Virus record (IMG/VR): IMGVR_UViG_3300042482_000702
Location: 186,001 to 250,000 of that record
DNA length: 64,000 nt
Strand: one strand, 5' to 3'
This document shows, one piece after another, positions 8,403 to 23,795 of this stretch. Every line of letters starts with the position of its first letter. Within the stretch, counting starts at the first letter, position 1. The notes below the pieces were generated by a model. That model made no database searches. It saw only the letters and a program-made list of their open reading frames with translations, and was not told the origin of the DNA. Both the position numbers and the translations under genes were made by a program.

Positions 8403-11141
8403 ATGGATATGAAAAAAATCTTAATTATAACCCCCCATTTAAGTACAGGTGGAGCTCCACAAGTAACTCTTAACAAAATAAAGTTGTTAAAAGACGATTG
8501 TATTATTAAATGCGTGGAATATTCCTTTATCGCTTGGAACTACGTCATTCAACGAAATCCACTTGAAAATATGTTATTAGATAATTTTCACTCATTAGGC
8601 GATAATAAATCTGAACTTATTAATATTCTAAAAGATTTTAACCCTGATGTTGTTAGTATGGAAGAATTCCCTGAATTCTTTATGGATGATAATATCACAA
8701 AAGAAATATATAAAGAAGACCGTAGATATACTATTTTTGAAACCACTCACGATTCTAGTTTTCCTGTTACATCAAAAAGATATTTTCCGGATAAATTTAT
8801 ATTTGTAAGTGCTTTTAACGCTTTCAGATATTCTATCTTTGATATTCCATATGAGATAATTGAATATCCTGTAGATGTTAAAATAAAAAATCAAAAAGAG
8901 AATCAAGAGAAATTAGATTTAAGTTCTGATTGGAAACATGTTGTTAATGTTGGTTTATTTACGGCAAGAAAAAATCAAAAATATCTTTTTGAGATTGCCG
9001 AATACTTAAAGAATTATAAAATTAAATTTCATTTTATTGGGAATCAAGCTGATAACTTTAAAGATTATTGGGAACCTTTAATTACTAACAAACCTAAGAA
9101 CGCCATTATTTGGGGTGAGAGAAATGATGTGGATAGTTTTATTCAGGCATCTGATGTGTTTTTCTTTTCATCGAAAGGTGACCGAAATAATAAGGAATTA
9201 AACCCTATCGCAATTAAAGAAGCTTTAGAGTATAAGATACCAATGATGATGTATAATTTGGAGGTTTATTGTGGTAAATACAATGATGAAAAATCAATCA
9301 CTTTTTTAACCGGCGATTTAAAACAAGATTCGGAAAACTTATTAAATATTTTGGGGGTTGAGGTTGATGATTCATTAACTTCCCATATAAATGATGATGA
9401 AGTTATTATTATTAGCACTTATCCTGACACTATTAAACGCAAAAATCTAACAATTGAATGTATTGAGAGTTTTAAACAATTAGGTAGAAAAATTATATTA
9501 GTTTCTCATTATCCGGTACCAAATGAGATACACGAGATGGCGGATTATTATGTTTTTGATTCAAATAATTTGATGATACCTCATTCATATTATACACACT
9601 TCTACAATAATACGAATCAATATAATGCCCAAATAAACATCAATGGATTATCAAATTCAAATCAATCATTGGCGGCACACATGAATTTTATGAATGGTGC
9701 TAAATTAGCCAAAGATATTGGTGCAACCAAATTTATGATAATCACTTATGATGTTATTCTAAATGATTTGGACATACCATTAATTGAAAAATATTTTAAT
9801 AAATTAACAACTTGGAACTGTTGTTTATCTTATATGGACAATGGTATTGAAACAACATCTATGGTGTTTAAAACTAGTTATTTTCTAAATACTTTTTTAG
9901 ACATTACTGATGAAGTAACCTTTAATAATCATTGTTCTGAATTGAAATGTCACAATTTTTTGGAAAATTATTATATGAAAATATTAGAAGGTAAAGAAAA
10001 CCTTTGGATTGAACATAACAATCAAAAAACTATTTTACCGAATTCGGGGTTGGGTGTATCATCTAATTCAGAATATTATTCTATTTTACCAGTTAATGAA
10101 ACTAAAAATAAATGGGTATTCTATTTTTATACTTATAATATTGATAATCGTAGATTAGAATTATCTATTAATAAATCGGGGAAAAACATCTTTAAAGATT
10201 CTATAATTATTTCCGAACGTAAGTCAGATTTAGTTTCGGATAGAGCAAAATATTTTAAACATATTGATTATGACGGAGAACCTATTGAAATTGTCATATC
10301 ATTTTATGATGGAGATAATTTACATAAAACAGAAACTTATGAATTAAATGATATTACAATTCACGAATACTATAACAATGGGTTTTTTAAAGAAAATAAT
10401 CAATCTTTAATATCTAATATTGAATCTCCGAAATATAACATTAAAATATTACATTTACAAACAACTATAAACGATGTTAGAGAACAGTTATCAAGAGAAT
10501 CTCTTCAGAAATTAAATGATTTTGGTTTTAATTATGTTTTACATAAAAATGTTCCGTACACATCATTACCACCGTCACATAATTGTTTAAGACCTCACAA
10601 TGTTAGGTTAGAGAAATACGATAATATTGATGACCCTGAGTACGGAAATGCTTTAACACCGGCTCATTATGGTTGTTTTGATTCATTTAAGTTAGGTATT
10701 TTATCAGAATTTGATAAAGAGTTAGATTTTCTAATTGTTTGTGAAGGTGATTGTATTATTGAAGTCCCTACGGAAGAATTTGTTAATAAAGTTAATATGG
10801 TTTGTGAAATAATTAACAATGAAGACATTTCTTACTTCTCATTTGGTGACACCAAAACATTAGATTTTGGGTGGCACCAATCCAATGAGATTAGAAAAAT
10901 CCCTAATCAAGATTTACTTTTTATCACCGATAAAATAATTGGATTACAATGTGTGATGTTCCCAATAAAAACTAGAGAATATCTTACCAATAAATTAAGA
11001 ACTGAAAAATGGGATTGTATGGATACATTTTTTAACATTATTTTTTCAAATAAAAATATGGGGATATTAAAGAATAGAATAACTACTCAGGCAGACGGAT
11101 TTTCTTTAATCGATAAAGAATTAAAAACATTTATAAAATAA
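8403..11141 (+). CDS. Multi-domain glycosyltransferase: N-terminal GT4 (GT-B), central GT-A-like domain, C-terminal GT25-like domain
   Basis: HLSTGGA...VGLFTARKNQ...SDVFFFSS...ELNPIAIKEAL (GT4); C-terminal HYGCFDS...LIVCEGDC resembles GT25 GC..SH...LILEDD. Confidence 0.7.
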   Translation: MDMKKILIITPHLSTGGAPQVTLNKIKLLKDDCIIKCVEYSFIAWNYVIQRNPLENMLLDNFHSLGDNKSELINILKDFNPDVVSMEEFPEFFMDDNITKEIYKEDRRYTIFETTHDSSFPVTSKRYFPDKFIFVSAFNAFRYSIFDIPYEIIEYPVDVKIKNQKENQEKLDLSSDWKHVVNVGLFTARKNQKYLFEIAEYLKNYKIKFHFIGNQADNFKDYWEPLITNKPKNAIIWGERNDVDSFIQASDVFFFSSKGDRNNKELNPIAIKEALEYKIPMMMYNLEVYCGKYNDEKSITFLTGDLKQDSENLLNILGVEVDDSLTSHINDDEVIIISTYPDTIKRKNLTIECIESFKQLGRKIILVSHYPVPNEIHEMADYYVFDSNNLMIPHSYYTHFYNNTNQYNAQININGLSNSNQSLAAHMNFMNGAKLAKDIGATKFMIITYDVILNDLDIPLIEKYFNKLTTWNCCLSYMDNGIETTSMVFKTSYFLNTFLDITDEVTFNNHCSELKCHNFLENYYMKILEGKENLWIEHNNQKTILPNSGLGVSSNSEYYSILPVNETKNKWVFYFYTYNIDNRRLELSINKSGKNIFKDSIIISERKSDLVSDRAKYFKHIDYDGEPIEIVISFYDGDNLHKTETYELNDITIHEYYNNGFFKENNQSLISNIESPKYNIKILHLQTTINDVREQLSRESLQKLNDFGFNYVLHKNVPYTSLPPSHNCLRPHNVRLEKYDNIDDPEYGNALTPAHYGCFDSFKLGILSEFDKELDFLIVCEGDCIIEVPTEEFVNKVNMVCEIINNEDISYFSFGDTKTLDFGWHQSNEIRKIPNQDLLFITDKIIGLQCVMFPIKTREYLTNKLRTEKWDCMDTFFNIIFSNKNMGILKNRITTQADGFSLIDKELKTFIK

Positions 11142-11152
11142 TAAATAACAAT

Positions 11153-13276
11153 ATGAGAATAACGCAAGTAACACCAGGAGTAATCCCTGTTCCACCTAAT
11201 GGATGGGGAGCCGTCGAAAAAATATTATGGTGCTATTATAAAGAATTTAATTCTTTAGGACACGAATGCACAATTAAATATTTAAACGAAGCGTCGACAG
11301 ATAATTCAGATATAATACATATCCATATCGCTAATTTGGCGTTAGACGCTGCGGAAAGAGGTATTCCTTATATTTTTTCCCTACACGACCATCATGTTGT
11401 TCATTACGGAAAAGATTCGTTTAATTATAAACAAAATTTAGAGGCAATACAAAAATCTGTAATATCATTTTGTCATGCGGAATATTTGGTTGATTACTTT
11501 GATGGGACTGATAAATTATTTTATTTATCTCACGGAGTTGAGGTTGATTATTTTAAAGTGGATAATTTATATAGGTCAGAGCATAAATTACTTTGTATTG
11601 CGAACAATGGTATCGGTGGTGATGTATCGTTTGATAGAAAAGGTTTTAGATACGCTATAGAGGCGGCAAAAAAACTAAATCTTCCAATAACAATTGCCGG
11701 ACCTGAAAATAATAAATCATTTTTTAAACATCATCCTGACTTATTAGAATATGAAAAATTAACGCTATTACTTACTAATTTAGGTGAAGATGAGATTTTA
11801 GAGTTATATAAATCACATTCAATATTTTTACACCCATCAATATTAGAAGCTGGTCACCCAAATTTAACATTATTGGAAGCGGTGTCTTGTGGACTTCCTG
11901 TTGTCGGAACATATGAGGGTTCTCAAAAAATAGATGGTATGGTTGTAACAGAGAGAAACTCTGATTCAGTAGCAAATTCTATTTCGGAAATAGTGGACCA
12001 ATACAAACATTATGTGGATTTAACTCAAAATAATAGAGATAAATTTGATTGGTCAATCATTTGCGAAAGAATGGTTAAAATGTATGAGGTAGTCACCTTA
12101 ATAAAAAAAGAATACACATCTGACGAAACTAAAAATTTATTTATAAAAAATTTTAACAATATAACGAAAACAATGGGATTAATAAACTCAAATAACCAAA
12201 ATGTAAAACCAAATGTAAAATATAATTTTCATTTTGTTAATCAACCTTTTTTTGAAATATTAGGAGATAGCGATAAAAAATTTAATGTTGGATTTTATGA
12301 TAGTGGTGGATTACATCATCACACGGAATTATCGTCAAATATGTGGACTAAAGTAAGTAGAGAATACTTTACAAATTGGTATATCAAAGTTTCTTGTGAT
12401 AATGACATTGTTTTTGAATATAACCTTGATTTAACAAATAGAAGAGTTTTCATTTCTTTTGAATCTAGTTCGTTGGGAGATAGTATTGCTTGGATACCAT
12501 ATGTTTTAGAATTTAAAAAACAACATAATTGTATTGTAATTGTCTCAACTTTTTGGAATAAATTATTTAAAAAATCCTACCCTGAATTAGAATTTGTTGA
12601 ACCAGGTTCAACTGTTAAAAATCTATTTGCGTTATATAGAATTGGATGGTTTGAAAATGAAACAAAGGAACCTTTTTACCCTAACACAATACCATTACAA
12701 AAAACAATCACAAATCTTTTAAAATTAGAACATACAGAAATTAAACCAATACTTGATTTTATACCTAAAGTAAAACCTATGGTTGAAAAATATATAACAA
12801 TAGCCGATGAGTCAACTGCCGGATTAAAACTATGGAATAACCCAAAAGGGTGGCAAGAACTTATTGATTATTTAACCGGATTAGGTTATAAAATTATTAA
12901 TATATCTAAACACGGTGGAAATTATAAAAATGTTACAAAATTAAAAGATACGTCAATAGAAAATACTATGAACTATATTCACCATAGTGAATTTTTTATA
13001 GGGTTATCAAGTGGGTTGTCTTGGCTTTCATGGGCGTTGGGTAAACATGTTGTAATGATTTCTAATTTTACTGAATCTGACCACGAATTTACATCAAATT
13101 GTACTAGGATAACAAATGATTCTGTGTGTAATGGATGTTGGAATAAATCAGAATTTAGGTTTGACCGTGGTGATTGGAACTGGTGTCCCGAACATAAGGG
13201 GACTCCTCGTCAATTTGAGTGTCATAAATCAATAACCTCTGAAATGGTGATAAAACAGATACAACATTTATTATAA
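11153..13276 (+). CDS. GT4 glycosyltransferase fused to a TibC/Aah-family (autotransporter) protein O-heptosyltransferase domain
   Basis: N-term PPNGWGAVE...RKGF...EAGHPNLTLLEAVSCGLPVV (GT4). C-term SLGDSIAW.PY...FFIGLSSGLSWLSWALGK.VVMISNFT...EF and CNGCWN-x-WCP.HK.T.RQFEC, the four-Cys iron site of the TibC/Aah family. Confidence 0.85.
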   Translation: MRITQVTPGVIPVPPNGWGAVEKILWCYYKEFNSLGHECTIKYLNEASTDNSDIIHIHIANLALDAAERGIPYIFSLHDHHVVHYGKDSFNYKQNLEAIQKSVISFCHAEYLVDYFDGTDKLFYLSHGVEVDYFKVDNLYRSEHKLLCIANNGIGGDVSFDRKGFRYAIEAAKKLNLPITIAGPENNKSFFKHHPDLLEYEKLTLLLTNLGEDEILELYKSHSIFLHPSILEAGHPNLTLLEAVSCGLPVVGTYEGSQKIDGMVVTERNSDSVANSISEIVDQYKHYVDLTQNNRDKFDWSIICERMVKMYEVVTLIKKEYTSDETKNLFIKNFNNITKTMGLINSNNQNVKPNVKYNFHFVNQPFFEILGDSDKKFNVGFYDSGGLHHHTELSSNMWTKVSREYFTNWYIKVSCDNDIVFEYNLDLTNRRVFISFESSSLGDSIAWIPYVLEFKKQHNCIVIVSTFWNKLFKKSYPELEFVEPGSTVKNLFALYRIGWFENETKEPFYPNTIPLQKTITNLLKLEHTEIKPILDFIPKVKPMVEKYITIADESTAGLKLWNNPKGWQELIDYLTGLGYKIINISKHGGNYKNVTKLKDTSIENTMNYIHHSEFFIGLSSGLSWLSWALGKHVVMISNFTESDHEFTSNCTRITNDSVCNGCWNKSEFRFDRGDWNWCPEHKGTPRQFECHKSITSEMVIKQIQHLL

Positions 13277-13277
13277 C

Positions 13278-13303
13278 AAAAAACCCCAATTAAGGGGTTT
13301 TTT
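13278..13303. terminator. Bidirectional intrinsic terminator between convergent genes
   Basis: aaaaaacccc-aattaa-ggggtttttt hairpin with A/T tails on both sides. Confidence 0.85.
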
Positions 13304-14178
13304 TATTGTTTTCTAATTGAATCTATAATTTGATTTACATCAAAAATTTCATTTAAGTCATTATACGGAATACTTGTCATATCTTGGAATAATAAATATT
13401 TAGAGTAATGACCATGGTCTAACATTAGTTCTTTTGTTGGTGTGTTAGCCATTATATTTGTATTGGTGTGGTATCCAAATACATTAGGGTTAGTTCCAAC
13501 CCAAGTAACAACAGATGGAAGATTTAATGATGCCGCAATGTGCATAACACTTGAATCTATTAATAATCGTTTTTTAGATAAACTCAATAAAATTGCAATA
13601 CTTCTAAAATCATCTAACGCTTGTAAAGTGTCTTCATAAACAAATTGGTCTTCTCTTTTAATGTGAAGAATTGCGTAATCATTTTTAAAATATCTAATCA
13701 CTTCCTCTATTGTTGGTTGAGGTATATCACGAGTCCAACTATATTTTAAAGGTTGTCCTACAGCACCACCATTTGGTTGTATAACCATAATTGGTTTATC
13801 CACTTTATAGAATTGTGTGAAGTATTGTTTTTCGGCTTCAGATATAAAAATTTCAGGTAATTCACCTCTATACTCAACACCAAACATTTCACACCAAATC
13901 TGAATTAAGTGTTTAGATTCCGTAATGTAATCTGATGTTTGATATGGTTCACCAACAAACACTTTGGCGTCTTGGTCCATAATGTACTTAGCGTACAGCC
14001 CTGATAATTGTCCGTGATTTAATACCTTGTTCATATTTGGATTGTTAATAAAAACATCCGGAAAACCAGTTACTACAATTATATAACCGTCAGGGTATTG
14101 TCTTCTAATGGCTTTTAATACGGCGGTTCCCATTACGGATTTCCCCAATCCACCTTCTATTGAAAATATTATATTCAT
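13303..14178 (-). CDS. GT9-like (ADP-heptose:LPS heptosyltransferase fold) glycosyltransferase
   Basis: GGLGKSVMGTAVLKAIRRQYPD at N-term; IDSSVMHIAASLNLPSVVTWVGTNP..FGY matches the GT9 DSG.MH.A.A...P motif. Confidence 0.75.
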   Translation of the reverse strand: MNIIFSIEGGLGKSVMGTAVLKAIRRQYPDGYIIVVTGFPDVFINNPNMNKVLNHGQLSGLYAKYIMDQDAKVFVGEPYQTSDYITESKHLIQIWCEMFGVEYRGELPEIFISEAEKQYFTQFYKVDKPIMVIQPNGGAVGQPLKYSWTRDIPQPTIEEVIRYFKNDYAILHIKREDQFVYEDTLQALDDFRSIAILLSLSKKRLLIDSSVMHIAASLNLPSVVTWVGTNPNVFGYHTNTNIMANTPTKELMLDHGHYSKYLLFQDMTSIPYNDLNEIFDVNQIIDSIRKQ

Positions 14179-14190
14179 ATTTGTTTTTTT

Positions 14191-14637
14191 TTAATTGTTT
14201 AATATTTTTTTTATACATTCATTAACACCAATACTTGTTGTGTCAATATCAATAAAGTTTTCTGTTGGAGGTTCATAGTCATCAACAAACAAATTCTCCC
14301 TACCTCTAATTTCGGATGTGTGAACATAAATCTCTGTGATTTTTCTACCCATCTTTTTTTTAAATTTATCTCTTTGGTCTTTATATGGTGATACTAATGA
14401 AACAACAATATTAACACTTTGAGAACTGAGATATTGGGACATTTGTTGAGCAAGTTGAATATTTTTTCTTCTACCATCTTCAGAATAATCTTTATTATCA
14501 AATAAATCTCTAATATCATCACCATCAATGTGGAAACATAATTCCCTTTTAATATCAATAAGTGATGAAGATAATTCTTTTCCCAATGTTGTTTTACCAG
14601 CGCCCGGCTGACCTGTTATCCAATATATGTTAGACAT
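14191..14637 (-). CDS. cysC: Adenylylsulfate (APS) kinase, compact form; likely start 14637 rather than 14718
   Basis: WITGQPGAGKTT P-loop, IDGDDIR, DYS..GR..NI, VSLVSPY...R, EIYV, YEPP; ATG overlaps the sulfotransferase stop. Confidence 0.85.
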   Translation of the reverse strand: MSNIYWITGQPGAGKTTLGKELSSSLIDIKRELCFHIDGDDIRDLFDNKDYSEDGRRKNIQLAQQMSQYLSSQSVNIVVSLVSPYKDQRDKFKKKMGRKITEIYVHTSEIRGRENLFVDDYEPPTENFIDIDTTSIGVNECIKKILNN

Positions 14638-15451
14638 ACCCAAAATAATCATAAAACCATTTATAATGATTCTTAATGTTGGTTGATAATTCATAACCCA
14701 ATATATCCAAATAATCATCCGGTAATTTTCTAAATTCTTTTCTCAATACATGGTCACCATATATACCGTGAACAACATCATTTTCGTTTGTCACCTGTTC
14801 GATATATTCAAAATTGTGTTCTTGATACATTGGTTGTCCAACATAGTCGTAAAATCGTTTTAATTCTCTTTCAGGGTTATCCATCAAATCCTCGTATCTA
14901 ATAAATAAAATTTTAGTATGAAGTCCTTGTTGGAAGATATCTTGTAGTCGGTCTAATGTCACACCAACCGGTGGACCACTAGCCCAAATATCTATTCGTT
15001 TGTTTACAGTTGTTCCAACCAATTCGTTTGGGTTCTGTATATGATTTTCTTTGTGGGGGTTTTTTCTGAAGTTTTTTTCCATTGAGGAATAGACACATCT
15101 AATGTCTCTAACCATACAAACAATCTTTGGGTCTTCTTTGAATAAACTCAATAGATTGTAATTAATACCCCACCCTCGACTCTTGTCTAACACATATGGT
15201 TTATCTGTTAATTCCTCAAAGAATCCTTGAATCCCTTTTCTACAAAAATTAATGAATGCTTTTTCCATTAATTTGGGGTCTTGTGCTCTAATTTCTTGAG
15301 AACCATTATAATGATTTTTAGCTCCCGATACCAACTCAATTAATCCTGAAGTTGGGGTTACGTAAAATTGGGGGTTTTGTCCGATTAAATTTTGAAATAG
15401 GGTTGACCCTGCTCTAGGTAGAGAAGAGTTAAAAAAGATTATCTTATCCAT
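14630..15451 (-). CDS. PAPS-dependent sulfotransferase
   Basis: 5'-PSB loop SLPRAGSTL, 3'-PB motif KIVCMVRD...VYSS, IRYEDL...P. Confidence 0.85.
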   Translation of the reverse strand: MDKIIFFNSSLPRAGSTLFQNLIGQNPQFYVTPTSGLIELVSGAKNHYNGSQEIRAQDPKLMEKAFINFCRKGIQGFFEELTDKPYVLDKSRGWGINYNLLSLFKEDPKIVCMVRDIRCVYSSMEKNFRKNPHKENHIQNPNELVGTTVNKRIDIWASGPPVGVTLDRLQDIFQQGLHTKILFIRYEDLMDNPERELKRFYDYVGQPMYQEHNFEYIEQVTNENDVVHGIYGDHVLRKEFRKLPDDYLDILGYELSTNIKNHYKWFYDYFGYV

Positions 15452-15500
15452 AAATTATAACATATATTTGTGTTAATAATAAATGGATGTTGAATTGTTG

Positions 15501-15534
15501 TAAACCCTATTGAAGTAATTTTTAATAGGGTTTA
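15501..15534. terminator. Inverted repeat (hairpin; terminator or operator) upstream of the sulfotransferase
   Basis: taaaccctattgaa...tttaatagggttta, 14-bp stem with one mismatch. Confidence 0.5.
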
Positions 15535-15592
15535 TTCGAAAAAATAAAGTGGTCTTGTCCTCTCCGACCAGCCAATTCCCGTAGCAACCACC

Positions 15593-15856
15593 TTATAGTA
15601 ATATTGTTCCGATGATAGCACCTAATGTTGTGAAGGCGATGTCATAGTAATCAAAAGGGGCTTCGTGATATTTTCCATGATACCATTCCCAAACAAACCC
15701 TATTACATATCCAAATAGACCTGCAACAAATGCCTGTCCAATCTTTCCGATGTCAAAGGAGGGGTCGTATTTTATTAATAACCAAATAAATGGTGTCACT
15801 ATTAAAGCACCACCAAGTATGTGTAGGTAATATCGCTGTTTAAAAAAATTATTCAT
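15593..15856 (-). CDS. Small integral membrane protein (87 aa)
   Basis: Three hydrophobic segments; LH..GG...WE......FD..D...T..G pattern. Confidence 0.7.
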   Translation of the reverse strand: MNNFFKQRYYLHILGGALIVTPFIWLLIKYDPSFDIGKIGQAFVAGLFGYVIGFVWEWYHGKYHEAPFDYYDIAFTTLGAIIGTILL

Positions 15857-15861
15857 AAATT

Positions 15862-16035
15862 TTAATTATTATTGTTTATATAAGGTTGTTCGTCATACCA
15901 AGTCCATCCATCGACGGGGTAAGTGTAAGTATCTTTTAATTCTTTTTCTAATGTATAGTTGGGTGCGTAAATAGCATTTGGCGCATATTGCCAATTCCCA
16001 TCTTCTAGTTTATAAAATCCTGATGTATTTTCCAT
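15862..16035 (-). CDS. 57-aa protein downstream of the LRR fibre gene (not in ORF track)
   Basis: MENTSGFYKLEDGNWQYAPNAIYAPNYTLEKELKDTYTYPVDGWTWYDEQPYINNNN*; fills the gap, ATG 4 nt after the upstream stop, stop 5 nt before the next ATG. Confidence 0.8.
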   Translation of the reverse strand: MENTSGFYKLEDGNWQYAPNAIYAPNYTLEKELKDTYTYPVDGWTWYDEQPYINNNN

Positions 16036-16039
16036 ATTT

Positions 16040-18220
16040 TTAAAATGTTACTGTCCAGCCTTTATTTGTTGCAATTGTTTTTGTGCAACCTGCTACTCCT
16101 GTGCAACCTGTTATATTAATTGTTTTTGTTGTTACTGTTGTTAAGTCTGTGAATAACTGATTCAACGCTGCTATATCTAAATCACAATAAGAAACATTTA
16201 TTTGTGGTGATGTTCCTGTCCATTGTCCTGCTCCTGTATTTAAAAGTCTTAGACTATTTAGTCTACTGAAGTTTGTTGCACTGGTACCGTTAATTGCTAA
16301 TAACGAGAATGGACAACTAAAACTTAGTGATGGTAGTCGGTTGGCTTGAGTAATAACACCAGCTGATACTAGAGGTGTAGCTGTTAAACTACCTAATTTA
16401 TTTAGATTATTTATTGTAGTTAGGTTACTGCATTGAGCAAATATAGAGGTTAATGTAGTTAGTGCTGATGTTTGAGTTGTTGGTAATGTTAATGTCTGTA
16501 AATTAACACATTGTACAAATGCTGATGCAAAGGTTGTTAAGGATGCAGAAACTGTTGCCGGCATTGTTATGGAAGTTAGTGACCAACAACCATTAAAGGT
16601 ATTAAGAAAAGTTGTACAACCATTCATACTAGTTGGCATTGTAACTGAGGATAGAGATTCACAAGTATTAAAACAGTTAGCTGCAGTAGTTACCAAATTC
16701 ATTGTTGATGGAAAAGCTACACTAGTAAGTAGTAAACAATTCTGGAATGTTGTTGATAATGATGTTGCTGCTGTCATGCTGGTAGGCATCGTTATAGATT
16801 CTAATTTGTTACATCCCAAACACATAGACGCCATTGAGGTAATACTGTTTTGAGTATTATTTGGAAGAGCTATTGTTTTTAAATTAATACAATTTTGAAA
16901 AGCAGTACTTAAACTGGTTATTGTCCATCCAGACGGTATTGTTATTGAAGGTAATACATAACAGCTATCAAACATTCCGGCCATTCCAATAGTTGCTCCA
17001 ACTGTTGTTGGTAGGGTAACAGATGTTAGTAGATAACATCCACTAAAACAACTAGTAGCGACAGTCAAATTCGCCATCCCTGATTGAAAAACAACTCTTG
17101 TTAGTGACTCGCATCCAAGAAAGCAACTAGATAATGCTGAAGCATTAAAGTTTGTTGGAAAAGTTATAGTCTTTAAATTAACAACACCATTAAATGTTGA
17201 GGTTAGGTTATATACGGCATTACTTGAGCAGGTTGATGGTAGATATACGTTCTGTAAACTAGTACATGACGGGTTAAATGCTGTGGTAAGGTTTACTGCT
17301 GTTGCGGGGCTGGCTGGTGATGGTAGTGATGTAAATTTAACCCACTGTAGTGAGCGACAAGAACCAAACGCACTCTCTAAACTTACTACTAAATTAATAC
17401 TAGGTAAGGTAATATTTTTTAAACTAGCACAGTTTTGAAATGCTGTTAGTAGGGTTGTACAACTATTTAATGTTGTTGGGAATAATACTGTTCTAAGATT
17501 TATACAACCATTAAATGTAAGAGTTAAGTTAGTTATGGTAGTAGCATTTGATGGCAGTACTATATCTCGTAGATTAGTACAACTATTACACATGCTTGTT
17601 AAATTAGTTAATGAATCGGCAGATGTTGGCATCACAATTTTATATAAACTACCACAGTTCATAAACATAGCTACCATTTGAGTTGTCCAAGCAACTGAAG
17701 AAGGTAGTTTTACATATTCCAATAATTCAAAAGTGGAAACTGAAGTTGTACCACCAGCAGAAGAAAAATAAGTACCGGTTAATTCTGTTGTATTACAAGT
17801 GTTATCCCCAAAATACGCCTCTAACAATCCAACATTATAATAAATAGCACCTCCGGTAACCGTAAAATTAGACAAATGTTTGGCGTTAGTTATGACACAG
17901 GTTGCGTCACCATATATTCTTATTTTAAATGTGTTATACCCTCTATAACAAGGAGTACCTCCTGTTGAATAGACGTGTTCAGTTGTTGTAGAGGTAATAG
18001 TTGATATTGTATCTACGGTACCATCTCCCCAATCAATATAAATATTTCCTGAAGTTCTTGTAAATGTGGTTTGAATTGCAAATGCCTTCGCACTTGTATC
18101 GGCAACTAAAAACTGAACCTCATTTGCGGTGTCAGTAATTGTTATCCAGTCAGAAGGTCTTACCCAATCAGATGGTGTTGCAATTGGCGCTATTGAATTT
18201 ATTGGTACATTAAAAGCCAT
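16040..18220 (-). CDS. BspA-like leucine-rich-repeat protein with PKD-like N-terminus (putative receptor-binding protein)
   Basis: Many F..C..L..(I/V).(L/M)P repeats; IDWGDG; C-terminal IATNKGWTV cap. Confidence 0.8.
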   Translation of the reverse strand: MAFNVPINSIAPIATPSDWVRPSDWITITDTANEVQFLVADTSAKAFAIQTTFTRTSGNIYIDWGDGTVDTISTITSTTTEHVYSTGGTPCYRGYNTFKIRIYGDATCVITNAKHLSNFTVTGGAIYYNVGLLEAYFGDNTCNTTELTGTYFSSAGGTTSVSTFELLEYVKLPSSVAWTTQMVAMFMNCGSLYKIVMPTSADSLTNLTSMCNSCTNLRDIVLPSNATTITNLTLTFNGCINLRTVLFPTTLNSCTTLLTAFQNCASLKNITLPSINLVVSLESAFGSCRSLQWVKFTSLPSPASPATAVNLTTAFNPSCTSLQNVYLPSTCSSNAVYNLTSTFNGVVNLKTITFPTNFNASALSSCFLGCESLTRVVFQSGMANLTVATSCFSGCYLLTSVTLPTTVGATIGMAGMFDSCYVLPSITIPSGWTITSLSTAFQNCINLKTIALPNNTQNSITSMASMCLGCNKLESITMPTSMTAATSLSTTFQNCLLLTSVAFPSTMNLVTTAANCFNTCESLSSVTMPTSMNGCTTFLNTFNGCWSLTSITMPATVSASLTTFASAFVQCVNLQTLTLPTTQTSALTTLTSIFAQCSNLTTINNLNKLGSLTATPLVSAGVITQANRLPSLSFSCPFSLLAINGTSATNFSRLNSLRLLNTGAGQWTGTSPQINVSYCDLDIAALNQLFTDLTTVTTKTINITGCTGVAGCTKTIATNKGWTVTF

Positions 18221-18224
18221 TTAA

Positions 18225-21200
18225 TTATGTTGTTTGTGTTATTATAATATCTACCGTCATATTTGCGTCAGGTGGAAATTGAGAGTAAAATGTTGCGACT
18301 CCTGAAGCAACACCTACATAAGGTAATACTTGTGCGTTATACGCTGTTAGATAACTTGCATTTTGTGGTGTGACAGATACATCACAATTTGCGGTAATAT
18401 TTACATTACTGAATGAGTATGTGTAATATCCTGACACTAATGTCCACGATGATGCGGTTAATGTTTGACCTGTAAGTTTAATTGGTGTTGAACCTCCACC
18501 ACCTGAACTTGTTCCACTAGTACCTGACATTCCTGATGTTCCCGCAATACCATTTTCTCCTGATGTCCCTGATGAACCACTAACCCCTATTCCACTTGTT
18601 CCACTAGAACCTGCGGCTCCTGATGTTCCTGAAGAACCGCTATTACCAGTACTACCAGATGTTGTTACTAATAAACCATTTGCTCCAACACAGATTGAAC
18701 ATCCCGATGAACCAGTGAAACTACAAACAGATAAGTCATTAACAAATGTTGTACACGCTCTATTCGCTGTTATATTACTACCTATGATGTTAGAATGAGG
18801 AAAGGAAGATGATATTGTGTTTAATTGACCACCAAGGATTGATGAATAAGAACTAGAAACAGAATTACAACAACCACCACCGACTGTTGACAAAGGGCTA
18901 AAAGTTTTATTACCTTTACCACCAGCAATTGTTGAACAATTTCCACAACTAGCGTTACCATAACCACCACCAATAAATGATGTTGTCCCCGATGCAATGT
19001 TACTTATACCACCAACAACAACAGACGCACATCCAAAAGCTGTGTTACCAATATAAGTCAAAGGGTCCCAAAATCCACCACCAACGAATGAATAGTAACC
19101 TAAAGCACAATTACCTTTACCACCACCAATTGTTGAGGAACGACCACAAGCCCTATTACTCCTACCACCCGCAATTGTTGAGTAGTAACCGTTGGCATGA
19201 TTAGCATCACCCCCTCCAACTGTTGATATATACTTAGCACAATTATTAGAACCACCAGCGATTGTTGCAGTTGAACACGTAGTATAATTACCCTGACCAC
19301 CACCAATGGTTGAGATACTACCGCTACAAATATTATTACTATAACCACCACCAATTGTTGTATAAGCACCTGAACCTGTCTTATTACGACAACCACCACC
19401 AATAGTTTGATTAAGATAAGAGGTAACATTATAGGCACCACCACCAATGGTTGAACAATGTCCCGTTGCAGAGTTTTTAAATCCACCACCAACTGTTGAG
19501 GTATTTCCTGAAGAAATATTAAAATGACCACCACCGATGGTTGTATGAACTCCACCGACAGTGTTACAACGACCTCCACCAATGGTTGTAAAACCAACAT
19601 AAGGAGTTGAGGTATTACAATAACCTCCTCCTATTGTATTACCACCAGTATTTAAACTAACCCCTCCATATACGTTTGTATTAATAGTATTTTTATTTCC
19701 ACCGTTAATAACATCACCTATTCTTGGAGATGTATTATTATAGTTTTGTGATGGAAATATTCTGTTACAACAACCACCACCGATAAATGATGTTGTTCCT
19801 GACGATACATTATTTTGACCTCCAACAACTGTCGAAAAATTACATGATGCAGTATTTCCACTACCCGCTAATGCGGCTGAAAAACACGATGATGCTGTAT
19901 TATTAACACCACATCTAATAGTCGAATTAACACCTGTTCCGGTAATGATTATACTATCACCACCTCCACCACCAGAAGCAACAGGAATTAATAAACCATT
20001 TGCTCCAACACAGATTGAACATCCAGATGACCCAGTAAAACTACAAACAGATAAGTCATTAACAAATGTTGTACAAGTTCTATTTGCGGTTATATTACTA
20101 CCTATGATGTTAGAATGAGGAAAGGAAGATGATATTGTGTTTAATTGACCACCAAGGATTGATGAAAAATTACCACAAACAACATTACGAAAACCACCAT
20201 TAATGGTATTACATCCATATTCAGGAAATATATTGTTACAATAACCACCATTAATGGTATTACCACCAACAATATTATATGCACCACTATTTGAGTGGAT
20301 AGTATTACAACCACCTCCTCCAATAATATTTGGTATAATACTATAAAGATTACCGTTAGTGGTAAAATTACAAATAGTGTTACAACATCCACCACCAATT
20401 GTTGAGTTATCAGCAATAGCTCTATTTAATACACCACCGCCAATTGTAATATTACATCCAACAACTGTTCCGGTACAAGATGTGTTTGTAAAAGTGAGTG
20501 TTTGTCCGGCAGTAAAATAAGTGTTTGTTGGGATTTTTGTAAGTCCCGATGAATAGTTTACACCATACGTACAAGATATAACCGCAACACAATTAACCCA
20601 TTTATTTGTTTGGTTGTAAACCATTAATGTTGTTGAGTAAGGGGTAAATTGACTAACAAGATTACCTGAAACATATATATATGCACCATTAACACAAACG
20701 GAGTTAAATCTTGGTGTGTTTGAAATAAAATTCATTACTCCACCACCAATAGTTGACACAGGACCTTTTGATATATTACCTTGACCACCACCAATAACTG
20801 AACAACCATTAAATATGATATTATCACCTCCTCCTCCAATTGTTGAGGTATTACCAGACGAGATATTACTAATACCTCCACCAACTGTTGAACAATTACC
20901 TGTTGCGCGGTTACTTATACCACCACCAATAAATGATGTTGTTCCTGATGCAACATTACCTAGTCCACCAACAACAGCAGACGCAAATCCGAAAGCTGTG
21001 TTACTAATATAAGTTGTACCCTCTCTACATCCACCACCAACGAATGAATAGTCACCTAAAGCACAGTTATACCACCCACCACCAATTGTTGAAGATTTCC
21101 CACATGCTTTATTACTTCTACCACCACCAATTGTTGAGTAGAAACCTTTGGCACAATTATTACCACCACCTCCAACTGTTGATATATATGTAGCGCAATT

Positions 21201-23795
21201 ACCCACACCACCACCAATTGTTGCTTGACTATAATTAACTCTATTACCTTGACCACCACCAATTGTTGGATAATTACCACTATAAATATTATTATCTGAA
21301 CCACCACCAATAGTTCCTCCAATACTCGCACCCATTTTATTTTGAACACCACCACCAATAGTTTGATTACAATAAGAGGTAACATTATAGGCACCACCAC
21401 CAATGGTTGAACACGCTCCCATTGCAGAGTTTCTAAATCCACCACCAATGGTTGATAATCTACCAGAGTTAAAACAATCAATTGTTTCGGTTAAATAACC
21501 TGTATACATATCAAATGTCCCACCTGATGAGTTATGTCCAATACCTCCTCCAATTGTTACACCTAATGAACTACATTCGTCAGTTGGTGATTGAATTGTA
21601 TTTCTTTGTCCACCACCTATTATTGAGAATCTAGCGTTTGTCGTGTTTCCACTACCACCTAATGCTGCTGAAAAATTTGCCGAAGCAATATTACCAACAC
21701 CACATCTCATAGTTGAATTAACTCCTGTTCCTGTAATGATTATACTATCACCACCTATTGGACTTGTTCCACTTGTTCCTGCTGAACCTGTTTCACCACT
21801 AGTTCCTGAAGAACCACTCTCACCACTTGTTCCTGATGTTCCGTTATCACCACTTGTTCCGCTAGAACCTGTTTCACCACTTGTTCCTGCTGAACCTGTT
21901 TCACCACTAGTTCCTGAAGAACCACTCTCACCACTTGTTCCTGATGTTCCGTTATCACCACTTGTTCCGCTAGAACCTGTTTCACCACTTGTTCCTGAAG
22001 AACCACTAGAACCTGATGTTCCGTTATCACCACTTGTTCCTGAAGAACCACTAGTCCCACTTTCACCTGATGTTCCCGAAGAACCACTTGTTCCGGATGT
22101 TCCATTAGCTCCACTTGTTCCACTAGAACCTGACGAGCCATAAACAGCTCCAAGAGTTGTTATTACATAAGAATAATTGGTTGTACCTTCCGTATACCAC
22201 GTAACATCACGATTCCCATTTGATTGGTCAACTACATAAATTTTAACAATCATTCTATCAGTTGGAAGAATAGTAAATGATGTTGGTATAACTAAATCAA
22301 CATATACTTCAACAGGTAAAATAGAACCAATCCAACCAATTTCTATTTGATTTGTTGAGAGGGGTGTTCCTGAATATGGTGTTCCAGTACTATCGGCTAG
22401 TTCTATTGTGCAGAATGTGTCTGTTAAAAATGATTGTCCACTTTTTAAGAAATGTAAATGGAATCTCTGTACTCCTGGTGGAATAACGGTAACACCTAAC
22501 CCTGATGAATCAGTTATAAAAGTGTCGACTAACACAGGTGTTAACCCTGTTGTTGTTCTCGTTACTGTTTGAGTAGTTGCTGTTGTTGCTGATGAACTAA
22601 TCTGTTTATACGATAACGGTGTTTGTGTTACGGATTCATTAAAATAAAATATTTGTCCTGATGAAATACCGTTTTCTCCTGATGAACCACTTGTCCCGCT
22701 AGAACCACTTGTCCCGCTAGAACCTGAAGAACCTGATGTTCCTGAAGAACCCGAAGTTCCGTCAATACCGCTAGTACCTGAAGTTCCGTCAATACCGCTA
22801 GTCCCTGAAGAACCAGAAGTTCCGTCAATACCGCTAGTGCCTGATGTTCCGTCAATACCGCTAGTTCCACTTGACCCTGAAGTTCCGTCAATACCGCTTG
22901 TCCCCGAAGTTCCTGAAGTTCCGTCAATACCGCTAGTCCCTGAAGAACCAGATGTTCCGTCAATACCGCTAGTTCCTGAAGAACCAGATGTTCCTGAAGA
23001 ACCTGAAGTTCCGTCAATACCGCTAGTTCCACTTGACCCTGAAGTTCCGTCAATACCGCTAGTTCCACTTGACCCTGAAGAGCCGCTAGAGCCTGACGAA
23101 CCTGATGTACCATCAATTCCGCTAGTACCCGATGTACCATCAATCCCGGTGGTATCAATAGATACGGTTGCACCGTCATTTCTATATAAATCTAAAGTAG
23201 ATGTTGCGGAAAAATAAGTTCCTCCCGTAACATATATATCTTGTATTGCTGTTGCAAATTTTCTCCATCTAGCATTAATTCGTGTGACACCATCAACATC
23301 TTCAATCGTTGACCCTGTCCAAGTATTAATAAATAATTGACCTTCTAAAGAATTATTTTTAACTGTTGTCCCAAAATCTGATATAACGACAGTATCACCC
23401 CCAGGTCCTGACGCGCCTAAAGCGTCAGACCATAATGTGTTATAATTATCTATTGAAAATTGATATACTTGGTCTGTTTCATATACATAAACCAACATAC
23501 CCAATCGTCTTCTACCTGATGAAATATTGTCAGAATTTAAAGTTATAGTGTCAAATGAGAATGAACTATTAATCCCTTTATAAAATTGGATAGGAATAGT
23601 ATTACCCGAAAATTCAATATCACCGGTATCTCCAAAAGGTATGGTATAAATTAAATCATTTAAGGTGTAAACCTCCATAAAACCCCCCGTATTTAAAACG
23701 CTAAATGTTGTTCCAAATGTGCTAGTTCTTAATGAAGATTGACTCCCTAAAGCGATTATAGGTGATAATGGGTTTTTATAATTTAAATTAGACAT
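18225..23795 (-). CDS. Giant fibre protein (1856 aa) with Pro-free Gly-X-Y (GTS/GSS) tracts and a duplicated Cys-rich STIGGG beta-helix region
   Basis: Long (GTSGSS/GID/GET)n tracts; dozens of S(T/F)(I/V)GGG..N repeats; two copies of GGDSIIITGTGVNST.RCGV...CSICVGANGLL. Confidence 0.8.
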   Translation of the reverse strand: MSNLNYKNPLSPIIALGSQSSLRTSTFGTTFSVLNTGGFMEVYTLNDLIYTIPFGDTGDIEFSGNTIPIQFYKGINSSFSFDTITLNSDNISSGRRRLGMLVYVYETDQVYQFSIDNYNTLWSDALGASGPGGDTVVISDFGTTVKNNSLEGQLFINTWTGSTIEDVDGVTRINARWRKFATAIQDIYVTGGTYFSATSTLDLYRNDGATVSIDTTGIDGTSGTSGIDGTSGSSGSSGSSGSSGTSGIDGTSGSSGTSGIDGTSGSSGTSGSSGTSGIDGTSGSSGTSGIDGTSGTSGTSGIDGTSGSSGTSGIDGTSGTSGIDGTSGSSGTSGIDGTSGTSGIDGTSGSSGTSGSSGSSGTSGSSGTSGSSGENGISSGQIFYFNESVTQTPLSYKQISSSATTATTQTVTRTTTGLTPVLVDTFITDSSGLGVTVIPPGVQRFHLHFLKSGQSFLTDTFCTIELADSTGTPYSGTPLSTNQIEIGWIGSILPVEVYVDLVIPTSFTILPTDRMIVKIYVVDQSNGNRDVTWYTEGTTNYSYVITTLGAVYGSSGSSGTSGANGTSGTSGSSGTSGESGTSGSSGTSGDNGTSGSSGSSGTSGETGSSGTSGDNGTSGTSGESGSSGTSGETGSAGTSGETGSSGTSGDNGTSGTSGESGSSGTSGETGSAGTSGTSPIGGDSIIITGTGVNSTMRCGVGNIASANFSAALGGSGNTTNARFSIIGGGQRNTIQSPTDECSSLGVTIGGGIGHNSSGGTFDMYTGYLTETIDCFNSGRLSTIGGGFRNSAMGACSTIGGGAYNVTSYCNQTIGGGVQNKMGASIGGTIGGGSDNNIYSGNYPTIGGGQGNRVNYSQATIGGGVGNCATYISTVGGGGNNCAKGFYSTIGGGRSNKACGKSSTIGGGWYNCALGDYSFVGGGCREGTTYISNTAFGFASAVVGGLGNVASGTTSFIGGGISNRATGNCSTVGGGISNISSGNTSTIGGGGDNIIFNGCSVIGGGQGNISKGPVSTIGGGVMNFISNTPRFNSVCVNGAYIYVSGNLVSQFTPYSTTLMVYNQTNKWVNCVAVISCTYGVNYSSGLTKIPTNTYFTAGQTLTFTNTSCTGTVVGCNITIGGGVLNRAIADNSTIGGGCCNTICNFTTNGNLYSIIPNIIGGGGCNTIHSNSGAYNIVGGNTINGGYCNNIFPEYGCNTINGGFRNVVCGNFSSILGGQLNTISSSFPHSNIIGSNITANRTCTTFVNDLSVCSFTGSSGCSICVGANGLLIPVASGGGGGDSIIITGTGVNSTIRCGVNNTASSCFSAALAGSGNTASCNFSTVVGGQNNVSSGTTSFIGGGCCNRIFPSQNYNNTSPRIGDVINGGNKNTINTNVYGGVSLNTGGNTIGGGYCNTSTPYVGFTTIGGGRCNTVGGVHTTIGGGHFNISSGNTSTVGGGFKNSATGHCSTIGGGAYNVTSYLNQTIGGGCRNKTGSGAYTTIGGGYSNNICSGSISTIGGGQGNYTTCSTATIAGGSNNCAKYISTVGGGDANHANGYYSTIAGGRSNRACGRSSTIGGGKGNCALGYYSFVGGGFWDPLTYIGNTAFGCASVVVGGISNIASGTTSFIGGGYGNASCGNCSTIAGGKGNKTFSPLSTVGGGCCNSVSSSYSSILGGQLNTISSSFPHSNIIGSNITANRACTTFVNDLSVCSFTGSSGCSICVGANGLLVTTSGSTGNSGSSGTSGAAGSSGTSGIGVSGSSGTSGENGIAGTSGMSGTSGTSSGGGGSTPIKLTGQTLTASSWTLVSGYYTYSFSNVNITANCDVSVTPQNASYLTAYNAQVLPYVGVASGVATFYSQFPPDANMTVDIIITQTT
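18669..20166. repeat. ~178-bp near-identical direct repeat (18669-18846 and 19989-20166) ending each duplicated beta-helix module
   Basis: taataaaccatttgctccaacacagattgaacatcc...ccaccaaggattgatgaa at a 1320-bp offset. Confidence 0.85.
21760..22140. repeat. Gly-X-Y Ser/Thr coding repeat tract with a higher-order duplication
   Basis: GTSGESGSSGTSGETGSAGTSG units repeated. Confidence 0.85.
22670..23145. repeat. Gly-X-Y Ser/Thr coding repeat tract (GIDGTSGSSGTS)n
   Basis: ttccgtcaataccgct(a/t)gt core repeated about 9 times. Confidence 0.9.

Follow-up and report, generated by a model that had tools for sequence, protein, structure and literature searches.

The genome of a 322-kb freshwater phage contains a gene for a shortened APS kinase which overlaps a sulfotransferase gene. 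Viral cysC genes are usually catalogued as auxiliary metabolic genes, and virome surveys list them under the sulfur or energy pathway (PMC8066274), while the function of phage sulfotransferases is described as unclear (PMC10580990). The question thus arises whether this kinase supports sulfur assimilation by the host or supplies PAPS for sulfation. We analysed a window of 64 000 nucleotides (positions 186 001–250 000 of IMGVR_UViG_3300042482_000702), starting from a sequence-only reading which had proposed a PAPS-supply-and-use unit rather than sulfur assimilation. The module recurs in many uncultured phages and, in part, in bacteria, and viral cysC genes therefore probably serve sulfation of glycans rather than sulfur assimilation.

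Gene organization of the locus

The gene arrangement given by the sequence-only reading (an 8-nt overlap of the first two genes and a GT9-like gene 12 nt further on) was correct in every detail, and so was its description of a kinase of about 148 residues lacking the usual lid segment. All three genes are located on the minus strand (Table 1), which reads TTT GGG TAT GTC TAA at the end of the sulfotransferase gene and ATG TCT AAC at the start of the kinase gene, so that the two share ATGTCTAA. The kinase stop codon TAA is followed by the spacer AAAAAAACAAAT and the ATG of the GT9-like gene. A gene caller had used an upstream ATG for the kinase (153 residues), but 94 relatives begin at M-(I/V)-(Y/F)-W, which supports the start at 14637. 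The 8-nt overlap is kept in all close relatives (loci L104–L107, L008 and L009), while other lineages show overlaps of 1, 3 or 4 nt or gaps of 3–50 nt.

Table 1. Features of the sulfotransferase–kinase locus (window coordinates).
Feature	Position	Strand	Description
Two large glycosyltransferase genes	8403..13276	+	912 aa (GT4) and 707 aa (GT4 plus a GT9-like C-terminal part), facing the three-gene unit
Hairpin	13278..13303	.	G+C-rich, flanked by A and T runs, between the convergent GT9-like and 707-aa glycosyltransferase genes; likely two-way terminator
GT9-like gene	13303..14178	-	291 aa
Spacer	14179..14190	-	12 nt between kinase stop and GT9-like start
Short-lid APS kinase-like gene	14191..14637	-	148 aa
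Shortened lid	14284..14319	-	TSEIRGRENLFV, kinase residues 107–118
DGD motif and first phosphosulfate-binding Arg	14509..14526	-	DGDDIR, kinase residues 38–43
P-loop	14587..14613	-	GQPGAGKTT, kinase residues 9–17
Gene overlap	14630..14637	-	ATGTCTAA, 8 nt
Sulfotransferase gene (PAPS-dependent type)	14630..15451	-	273 aa
3'-phosphate-binding motif	15071..15112	-	VRDIRCVYSSMEKN, sulfotransferase residues 114–127
5'-phosphosulfate-binding loop	15398..15427	-	SSLPRAGSTL, sulfotransferase residues 9–18
Promoter-like site	15476..15504	-	TTTACA-17-TATTAT, 25 nt upstream of the sulfotransferase ATG
Fibre or adhesin-like genes	16040..23795	-	1856-aa collagen-repeat protein and 726-aa BspA-type LRR protein, directly upstream

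The promoter-like site has 10 of 12 matches but is no more than a consensus match, as the region holds fewer such sites than shuffled sequences do (8 against 16.3). The hairpin downstream of the GT9-like gene has 10 pairs, four of them GC, and a loop of six, followed by a T run, and is likely to close the operon. Contigs from an RNA library cover positions 13000–16000 at 90–95% identity, one of 680 nt spanning both gene junctions. However, these are contigs of a relative and may include DNA, and thus do not prove transcription.

The kinase is an APS kinase-like protein with a shortened lid

The kinase matches the Pfam family APS_kinase (PF01583) with 69.4 bits (cut-off 21.1), but only over profile positions 3–110 of 152. 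It scores below the cut-offs of all NCBIfam models (TIGR00455: 72.8 against 138.7). The AF2 model (pLDDT 88.9, pTM 0.85) is most similar to solved APS kinases, which occupy ranks 1–46 of a Foldseek search of PDB with TMq values of up to 0.88. The first other family (PSTK) has a TMq of 0.63.

Across 94 short kinases, G9, Q10, P11, G14 and K15 of the P-loop, D38, G39, D40 and R43 as well as R56, N59 and P84 are at least 98% conserved. According to phmmer alignments with solved APS kinases, these correspond to residues which bind APS and Mg-ATP in Mycobacterium tuberculosis CysC (Asp480, Arg483, Arg497, Ile523/Ser524; PMC4373884). Y51-S52 and V82-S83-P84 align to the position of the aromatic residue Phe492 and its following Ser and to the (F)ISP motif after strand 3 respectively.

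The lid gap is real. Kinase residues 1–106 align to APS kinases from PDB, about 20–22 target residues are then skipped, and residues 107–146 align to the ‘GEIKGFTGIDSEYEKP’ tail. A family HMM aligned to Salmonella CysC stops at ‘YIDT’. About 18–20 lid residues, or 18–22 relative to solved APS kinases, are missing, and 12 residues replace a lid of roughly 30. The protein has no N-terminal extension, and its 148 residues compare with about 175–210 in canonical enzymes such as those of M. tuberculosis and Penicillium chrysogenum or the kinase domain of human PAPSS. The missing part includes the Cys, Arg and Lys of C..RDxKGLY (Cys556, Arg559 and Lys562 in M. tuberculosis CysC), in place of which there is a conserved E-x-R-G-R-E loop with R111 and R113 at least 98% conserved. 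This is the lowest-confidence part of the model (pLDDT about 58). Whether F117 stands for the second adenine-stacking residue, Phe576, is ambiguous, as HMMER places R113 at that position.

The lid residues are reported as important in the M. tuberculosis enzyme: C556S is inactive, Arg559 stacks on the ATP adenine, and Lys562 contacts the gamma-phosphate and the 2'-OH of APS (PMC4373884). Activity of the short form therefore needs R111 and R113 to take over their roles, which is only inferred. One might assume that the protein is a non-catalytic APS/PAPS-binding subunit of the sulfotransferase, like the APS-kinase-like allosteric domain of the ATP sulfurylase from P. chrysogenum, which is also among the structural hits (1m8p, rank 48). 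The truncated lid, and a tight coupling of the genes which suggests matched amounts of the two proteins, would be in accordance with this. We consider it very unlikely, as the P-loop Lys/Thr and the DGD aspartates are conserved as a working kinase would need, and in many genomes the kinase is kept at a locus away from any sulfotransferase.

The sequence-only reading had also suggested that the short lid may alter the regulation or substrate of the enzyme. The short lid is, however, not a peculiarity of this phage but a widespread subfamily trait (3492 database relatives), and a change of substrate finds no support because the APS-contacting residues are conserved.

The sulfotransferase and the GT9-like protein

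The sulfotransferase matches Sulfotransfer_3 (PF13469) with 55.5 bits (cut-off 27), Sulfotransfer_1 (PF00685) with 44.1 bits (cut-off 22) and phrog_27463 (1.4e-36), and has 1812 database relatives. In an alignment of 16 sequences the patterns SSLPRxGSTL and VRDxRxxxxS (R115, D116, R118 and S123) are invariant. They correspond to the 5'-PSB loop and the 3'-PB motif as generally established for sulfotransferases. As the latter is expected to bind the 3'-phosphate of PAPS, APS probably cannot substitute for PAPS. There is no close characterized relative, the best PDB hits being SULT1A1 (E about 1e-3 over 60 residues).

The third protein can only be termed GT9-like. It reaches 20.4 bits for Glyco_transf_9 (PF01075, cut-off 22), over residues 193–239 only, while the relative in a further sulfotransferase-containing phage locus (L097) scores 23.9 bits. 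The best PDB hit is the heptosyltransferase WaaC (E 0.07). Its atlas neighbours are viral clusters, some carrying PF01075. Both facing glycosyltransferases match Glycos_transf_1, and the 707-aa protein additionally matches Glyco_transf_9 with 22.2 bits at residues 538–652. The fibre or adhesin-like genes were identified by matches to Collagen (139 bits) and LRR_5 (148 bits).

Linkage of the kinase to sulfotransferases in phages and cells

To check whether the gene pair is more than a chance arrangement, we compared related loci. In 33 of 46 dereplicated phage sulfotransferase lineages the short kinase is found in the flank of the sulfotransferase, and in 21 of these it starts within −30 to +120 nt of the sulfotransferase stop. 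The most constant partner of the sulfotransferase is the GT9-like gene (35 of 46 lineages). The other usual companions are a HxGH nucleotidyltransferase of 115–133 residues and a DUF2061 protein. However, two complete relatives (G001 and G002) carry the kinase but no Sulfotransfer_3 gene, only borderline Sulfotransfer_1/2 hits. In deposited phages (INPHARED), blastn and tblastn revealed no close relative of the locus, the best kinase hit being 36% identical over 72% of the query.

In 83 of 93 kinase loci the gene is located in a DUF3310-to-methylase block, which in the genome analysed here has a CAP-domain gene and two small ORFs in place of the kinase. A relocation of the kinase from this block is not shown, as sulfotransferase-linked kinases form the deep, diverse clades of the kinase tree. 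The DUF3310 type is one subclade, and the clade of the window kinase lies in a polytomy with it. One change of state suffices. Linkage to the sulfotransferase is probably ancestral.

Independent evidence comes from cellular genomes. In Verrucomicrobiota, Marinimicrobia, Bacteroidota and Fidelibacterota the short kinase is located in polysaccharide clusters with three other sulfotransferase families. Of 133 neighbours in 49 bacterial or archaeal loci, 18 are sulfotransferases (nine Sulfotransfer_5, six Sulfotransfer_2, three Sulfotransfer_1), and the rest are largely polysaccharide enzymes. No assimilation family is among the 25 commonest neighbour families.

A role in assimilatory sulfate reduction (APS to PAPS to sulfite to cysteine) might be supposed, as the kinase belongs to the same enzyme family as bacterial CysC. 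We consider this very unlikely in view of the cellular neighbourhoods, the overlap with a PAPS-type sulfotransferase gene within a glycosyltransferase cluster, and the absence of PAPS reductase/CysD, ATP sulfurylase and CysQ from the phage genome (no match to PF01747, PF01507, PF01467 or PF00459).

A kinase acting on another adenylylated compound or sugar nucleotide, e.g. the product of the small nucleotidyltransferase, with only an indirect link to sulfation, is also unlikely. The missing contacts to ATP and the APS ribose, the NCBIfam scores and the resemblance of the nucleotidyltransferase to NadM-type NMN adenylyltransferases and PPAT more than to ATP sulfurylase would be compatible with this. 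On the other hand, the residues holding the phosphosulfate and adenine of APS are conserved, and the kinase is linked to four Pfam families of PAPS-dependent sulfotransferases in phages and cells. Further, the phage lacks the nucleotidyltransferase altogether yet keeps the kinase gene overlapping the sulfotransferase gene. A NadR-like function of the pair (nicotinamide riboside kinase plus NMN adenylyltransferase) was rejected because the kinase is an APS kinase by residues and fold and the pair is located with sulfotransferases. An ADP-heptose pathway, with a HldC-like adenylyltransferase feeding the GT9-like enzyme, is not favoured. Only two of 133 cellular neighbours are GT9, the kinase of that pathway should be of a different fold, and this phage lacks the partner.

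Proposed function of the locus

Taken together, the three genes probably form one operon for making a sulfated glycoconjugate during infection. We propose that the 148-residue protein phosphorylates the 3'-OH of APS to give PAPS. As the phage encodes no ATP sulfurylase, the unit represents only half a supply pathway, and APS is assumed to come from the ATP sulfurylase of the host. The sulfotransferase, with which the kinase may be kept in step by the overlap, would use this PAPS to sulfate an acceptor glycan built by the GT9-like protein and the two facing glycosyltransferases, the by-product PAP being left to the host. Such a dedicated phage pathway was not turned up by our literature searches.

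For the acceptor we tentatively favour glycans on the neighbouring collagen-like or LRR proteins, which are candidate carriers by inference only. The operon follows fibre genes here and in three other phage lineages (L097, L099 and L100). Modification of a host cell-surface polysaccharide or LPS core, to block superinfection or aid release, appears less likely but remains possible. GT9 enzymes normally act on the LPS inner core, and cellular homologues of the kinase serve exported polysaccharides, with a Wza-like exporter beside the kinase in one cellular locus (L220), but the GT9 assignment is weak.

The naturally trimmed kinase, kept in phages, bacteria and archaea, may help to clarify what the lid of this family is needed for, may be a compact enzyme for PAPS regeneration in biocatalysis, and is a marker for sulfated polysaccharide clusters.

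Relationship to known systems

The sulfotransferases of cyanophages (S-SKS1, S-SRM01 and S-SCSM1) and OM43 phages belong to the same Pfam family, with 26–30% identity over nearly the full length. A tblastn search with the short kinase found no match in those phage records at E of 1e-5 or better. The window sulfotransferase belongs to a separate clade, mostly from lake water, that carries the kinase.

The small nucleotidyltransferase is adjacent to the kinase in most phage cassettes and in 32 of 51 cellular loci. In one Verrucomicrobiota genome the two are fused (281 residues), beside a GT4 and a Sulfotransfer_1 gene, which echoes bifunctional PAPS synthases (metazoan PAPSS, Aquifex Sat-CysC, CysNC/NodQ). 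The fused partner is, however, a minimal CTP_transf_like domain (25 bits) and not a PF01747 ATP sulfurylase. It is conceivable, though doubtful, that the pair represents a previously unrecognized minimal PAPS synthase with a third kind of ATP sulfurylase, which would be a new enzyme class. Phages such as this one would use the kinase half, with host APS, to sulfate the glycans of their own collagen-like fibres. The model of the nucleotidyltransferase is mediocre (pLDDT 71), and its fold matches (NadM, PPAT, then ATP sulfurylase, all with E above 1e-3) do not settle the acceptor.

The rhizobial nodP/nodQ and nodH genes follow the same logic, as a dedicated PAPS-supply gene is placed beside a PAPS-dependent sulfotransferase to decorate a secreted or surface molecule. 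The phage locus differs by the short-lid form of the kinase and by the lack of an ATP sulfurylase step, and where its relatives have a partner, this is the small nucleotidyltransferase and not CysDN or Sat. A DUF2061 gene is found in Mesorhizobium nod loci with nodH, nodP and nodQ (bioRxiv 10.1101/2022.04.26.489235) and also in the phage cassettes.

Organization of the locus

The 322,477-bp virus record from which the window is taken (bases 186001-250000) is rated complete by CheckV. The genome has 31.5% G+C and 22 tRNA genes, 21 of which lie in a single 30-kb stretch outside the window, all on the minus strand. A gene for a T4-type major head protein was also found. Near-identical sequence occurs in lake-water metagenomes from at least 16 studies.

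The locus consists of three minus-strand genes, which encode a sulfotransferase, an APS-kinase-like protein and a GT9-like protein. The ATG of the kinase gene overlaps the stop codon of the sulfotransferase gene by 8 nt (ATGTCTAA), and a 12-nt spacer separates the kinase stop from the ATG of the GT9-like gene. An upstream ATG would give a kinase of 153 residues, but 94 relatives start at M-(I/V)-(Y/F)-W, which favours the start codon that gives 148 residues. A promoter-like site is located just upstream of the unit and a G+C-rich hairpin closes it, both being consensus matches only. Every element of the observation made in the sequence-only reading (the 8-nt overlap, the GT9-like gene 12 nt further on, and a kinase of about 148 residues lacking the usual lid segment) is confirmed.

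Contigs from a metatranscriptome library cover the region at 90–95% identity, including one contig across both gene junctions, but these cannot prove transcription. The library is labelled marine, although the DNA samples containing the sequence are from lake water. A depth spike, which includes an A/T run, looks like a low-complexity artefact.

Coordinates of the features in the window, elsewhere in the genome (G000:C1) and in related loci (L) or genomes (G)
Feature	Location	Strand
Laminin_G_3 protein	window 2699-5866	
Two large glycosyltransferase genes	window 8403-13276	
707-aa protein, N-terminal GT4 domain and C-terminal Glyco_transf_9 match (residues 538-652)	window 11153-13276	+
G+C-rich hairpin	window 13278-13303	
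GT9-like protein, 291 aa	window 14178..13303	-
APS-kinase-like protein, 148 aa	window 14637..14191	-
Sulfotransferase, 273 aa	window 15451..14630	-
Promoter-like site	window 15504..15476	
Stretch covered by RNA-library contigs	window 13000-16000	
Depth spike in the RNA-library contigs	window 14111-14211	
BspA-type LRR protein, 726 aa	window 16040-18220	
Collagen-repeat protein, 1,856 aa	window 18225-23795	-
DUF285 protein	window 25560-29318	
T4-type major head gene	window 52282-54138	
Block from DUF3310 to the N6/N4 methylase	G000:C1:59500-61600 (L094:4504-6606)	
DUF2061 protein	G000:C1:103816-103968	
Stretch with 21 tRNA genes	G000:C1:264045-293929	-
c1 nucleotidyltransferase, phage cassette	L097:9306-9701	
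c1 nucleotidyltransferase, fused to the kinase (Verrucomicrobiota)	L188:5007-5852	
c1 nucleotidyltransferase (Fidelibacterota)	L220:5416-5757	
DUF2061 protein, phage cassette	L097:9931-10143	
2OG-Fe(II) oxygenase between kinase and c1	L001:6442-7197; L010:8437-8940	
Complete jumbo-phage relatives, borderline Sulfotransfer_1/2 hits	G002:C1:226648-226848, 131614-131886, 189582-189761; G001:C1:239485-239712	
Context of the kinase and c1 pair in marine group III archaea	L186:2379-7040	

The APS-kinase-like protein has a shortened lid

The kinase was assigned by Pfam to APS_kinase with 69.4 bits against a cut-off of 21.1, but only over profile positions 3-110 of 152. All NCBIfam APS-kinase models fall below their cut-offs. 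An AlphaFold2 model built on 28 relatives has a pLDDT of 88.9. Its 46 best PDB matches are all APS kinases, with TMq values up to 0.88, while the first other family, PSTK, reaches 0.63.

Alignments to solved enzymes were read against the structures of Mycobacterium tuberculosis CysC (PMC4373884). The P-loop is present, as are D38-G-D40 (LDGD, Asp480), R43 (Arg483), Y51 (Phe492), R56 (Arg497), N59 and V82-S83-P84 (Ile523/Ser524). Most of these are at least 98% conserved across 94 short kinases. About 18–22 residues of the lid are missing, and with them the equivalents of Cys556 (C556S is inactive), Arg559 (which stacks on the ATP adenine) and Lys562 (which contacts the gamma-phosphate and the APS 2'-OH). 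Residues reported as essential in a canonical enzyme are absent. The remaining lid, TSEIRGRENLFV, carries two arginines, R111 and R113, which are conserved in at least 98% of the sequences and which may replace the lost Arg and Lys.

A word search revealed 3,492 relatives of the kinase, the best 120 of which are all 140–160 residues long and 63–100% identical. The short lid is therefore the conserved state of a large subfamily and not the mark of a decayed gene.

Association of the kinase with sulfotransferases in phages

The sulfotransferase has invariant PAPS-binding motifs, SSLPRxGSTL and VRDxRxxxxS. It also belongs to a large family, with 1,812 relatives in the protein database and at least 480 in IMG/VR. 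We examined 86 loci around its relatives, which represent 46 lineages after dereplication at 90% identity. In 33 lineages the short kinase is found in the flank, and in 21 of these it starts within -30 to +120 nt of the sulfotransferase stop, sometimes overlapping by 1–8 nt. A five-gene set is present in 20 lineages: the sulfotransferase, the kinase, an HxGH nucleotidyltransferase of 115–133 residues (referred to as c1), a DUF2061 protein and the GT9-like protein. The gene order varies between lineages.

The window contains a reduced form of this set, with only the sulfotransferase, the kinase and the GT9-like gene together. In this genome the gene for the DUF2061 protein, a small membrane protein, is located about 96 kb away, beside genes for a calcineurin-like phosphoesterase and an FkbM methyltransferase, and c1 is absent. 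Two complete jumbo-phage relatives (G001 and G002) carry the kinase and c1 but lack a Sulfotransfer_3 gene. They show only borderline Sulfotransfer_1/2 hits (15–20 bits) in ORFs of 208–239 residues, which may be divergent sulfotransferases.

Many phages keep the kinase and c1 at another place, between a DUF3310 gene and an N6/N4 DNA methylase (83 of 93 kinase loci). The genome studied here has this block with a CAP-domain gene and two small ORFs in place of the pair. In a kinase tree, the sulfotransferase-linked genes form the deep clades and the DUF3310 type forms one subclade. The clade of the window kinase sits in a polytomy with that subclade, and one change of context is enough. We therefore do not claim a relocation. 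In two unrelated phage contexts (loci L001 and L010), a prolyl-hydroxylase-like 2OG-Fe(II) oxygenase is inserted between the short kinase and c1, the neighbours in L010 being radical-SAM genes and a carbamoyltransferase.

Association of the kinase with sulfotransferases in cells

The short kinase also occurs in Verrucomicrobiota, Marinimicrobia, Bacteroidota, Fidelibacterota and marine group III archaea, at 42–57% identity. In 32 of 51 such loci c1 follows it directly. One Verrucomicrobiota genome (locus L188) encodes a kinase-c1 fusion of 281 residues beside a GT4, a histidine phosphatase and a Sulfotransfer_1 gene, and another has the kinase beside two Sulfotransfer_2 genes. A Fidelibacterota chromosome (locus L220) has a Wza-like exporter followed by the kinase, c1, an aminotransferase and a Sulfotransfer_5 gene.

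To characterize this context, 133 mid-sized neighbours from 49 loci were scanned against Pfam. Eighteen are sulfotransferases, from three Pfam families. The other common families are UDP-glucose dehydrogenases, epimerases and glycosyltransferases, and no assimilation enzyme appears among the 25 commonest families. These cellular clusters are independent of the phage data and are the strongest argument that the short-lid protein really supplies PAPS. A different context is found in marine group III archaea (locus L186), where the pair of kinase and c1 sits between SAM synthetase plus SAH hydrolase and serine hydroxymethyltransferase. This is a methionine and one-carbon context, not a polysaccharide one.

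Proposed function of the unit

We propose that the host makes APS, that the kinase converts it to PAPS and that the sulfotransferase spends the PAPS, with the overlap keeping the two proteins in step. This mechanism is deduced from sequence, predicted structure and gene context rather than from measured activity, and the host is unknown. The phage has no ATP sulfurylase, no CysD or PAPS reductase, no CTP_transf_like gene and no CysQ. Assimilation therefore appears not to be the purpose, in agreement with the sequence-only reading of a unit for PAPS supply and use, and both APS supply and PAP disposal would fall to the host.

The operon faces two large glycosyltransferase genes, one of which encodes a protein that combines an N-terminal GT4 domain with a C-terminal part matching Glyco_transf_9 (22.2 bits), a second GT9-like module. 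It directly follows the genes for a collagen-repeat protein and a BspA-type LRR protein. The former has long Gly-X-Y repeats rich in Ser and Thr (GTSGSSG...), and large internal segments are duplicated. Genes for a DUF285 protein and a Laminin_G_3 protein lie nearby. The same order, fibre gene then sulfotransferase, recurs in three of the related phage loci (L097, L099 and L100). On that basis we tentatively favour glycans on the fibre proteins as the acceptor, which has not been identified, the main alternative being a host surface polysaccharide.

The logic of the unit matches that of bacterial nodPQ-nodH-type clusters. A DUF2061 gene is located in Mesorhizobium nod loci with nodH, nodP and nodQ (bioRxiv 10.1101/2022.04.26.489235), although its role in sulfation is unknown. 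The differences here are the phage setting, the trimmed kinase, and the missing or unconventional sulfurylase step. Viral cysC has been listed as a sulfur-pathway gene (PMC8066274) and phage sulfotransferases have been called functionally unclear (PMC10580990); in the literature searched, which may not include all relevant papers, we found no description of the cassette or of the short-lid subfamily.

The c1 protein, which is not encoded in the window or its genome, contains the motifs GRWQPxHxGH and ISATKIR and directly follows the short kinase in most phage cassettes. Pfam assigns it to CTP_transf_like with 33 bits and gives a sub-threshold ATP-sulfurylase hit at 18.5 bits. Its predicted fold matches NadM, PPAT and, lower in the list, ATP sulfurylase. 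It is possible that c1 is a minimal ATP sulfurylase, an idea favoured so far by gene context only.
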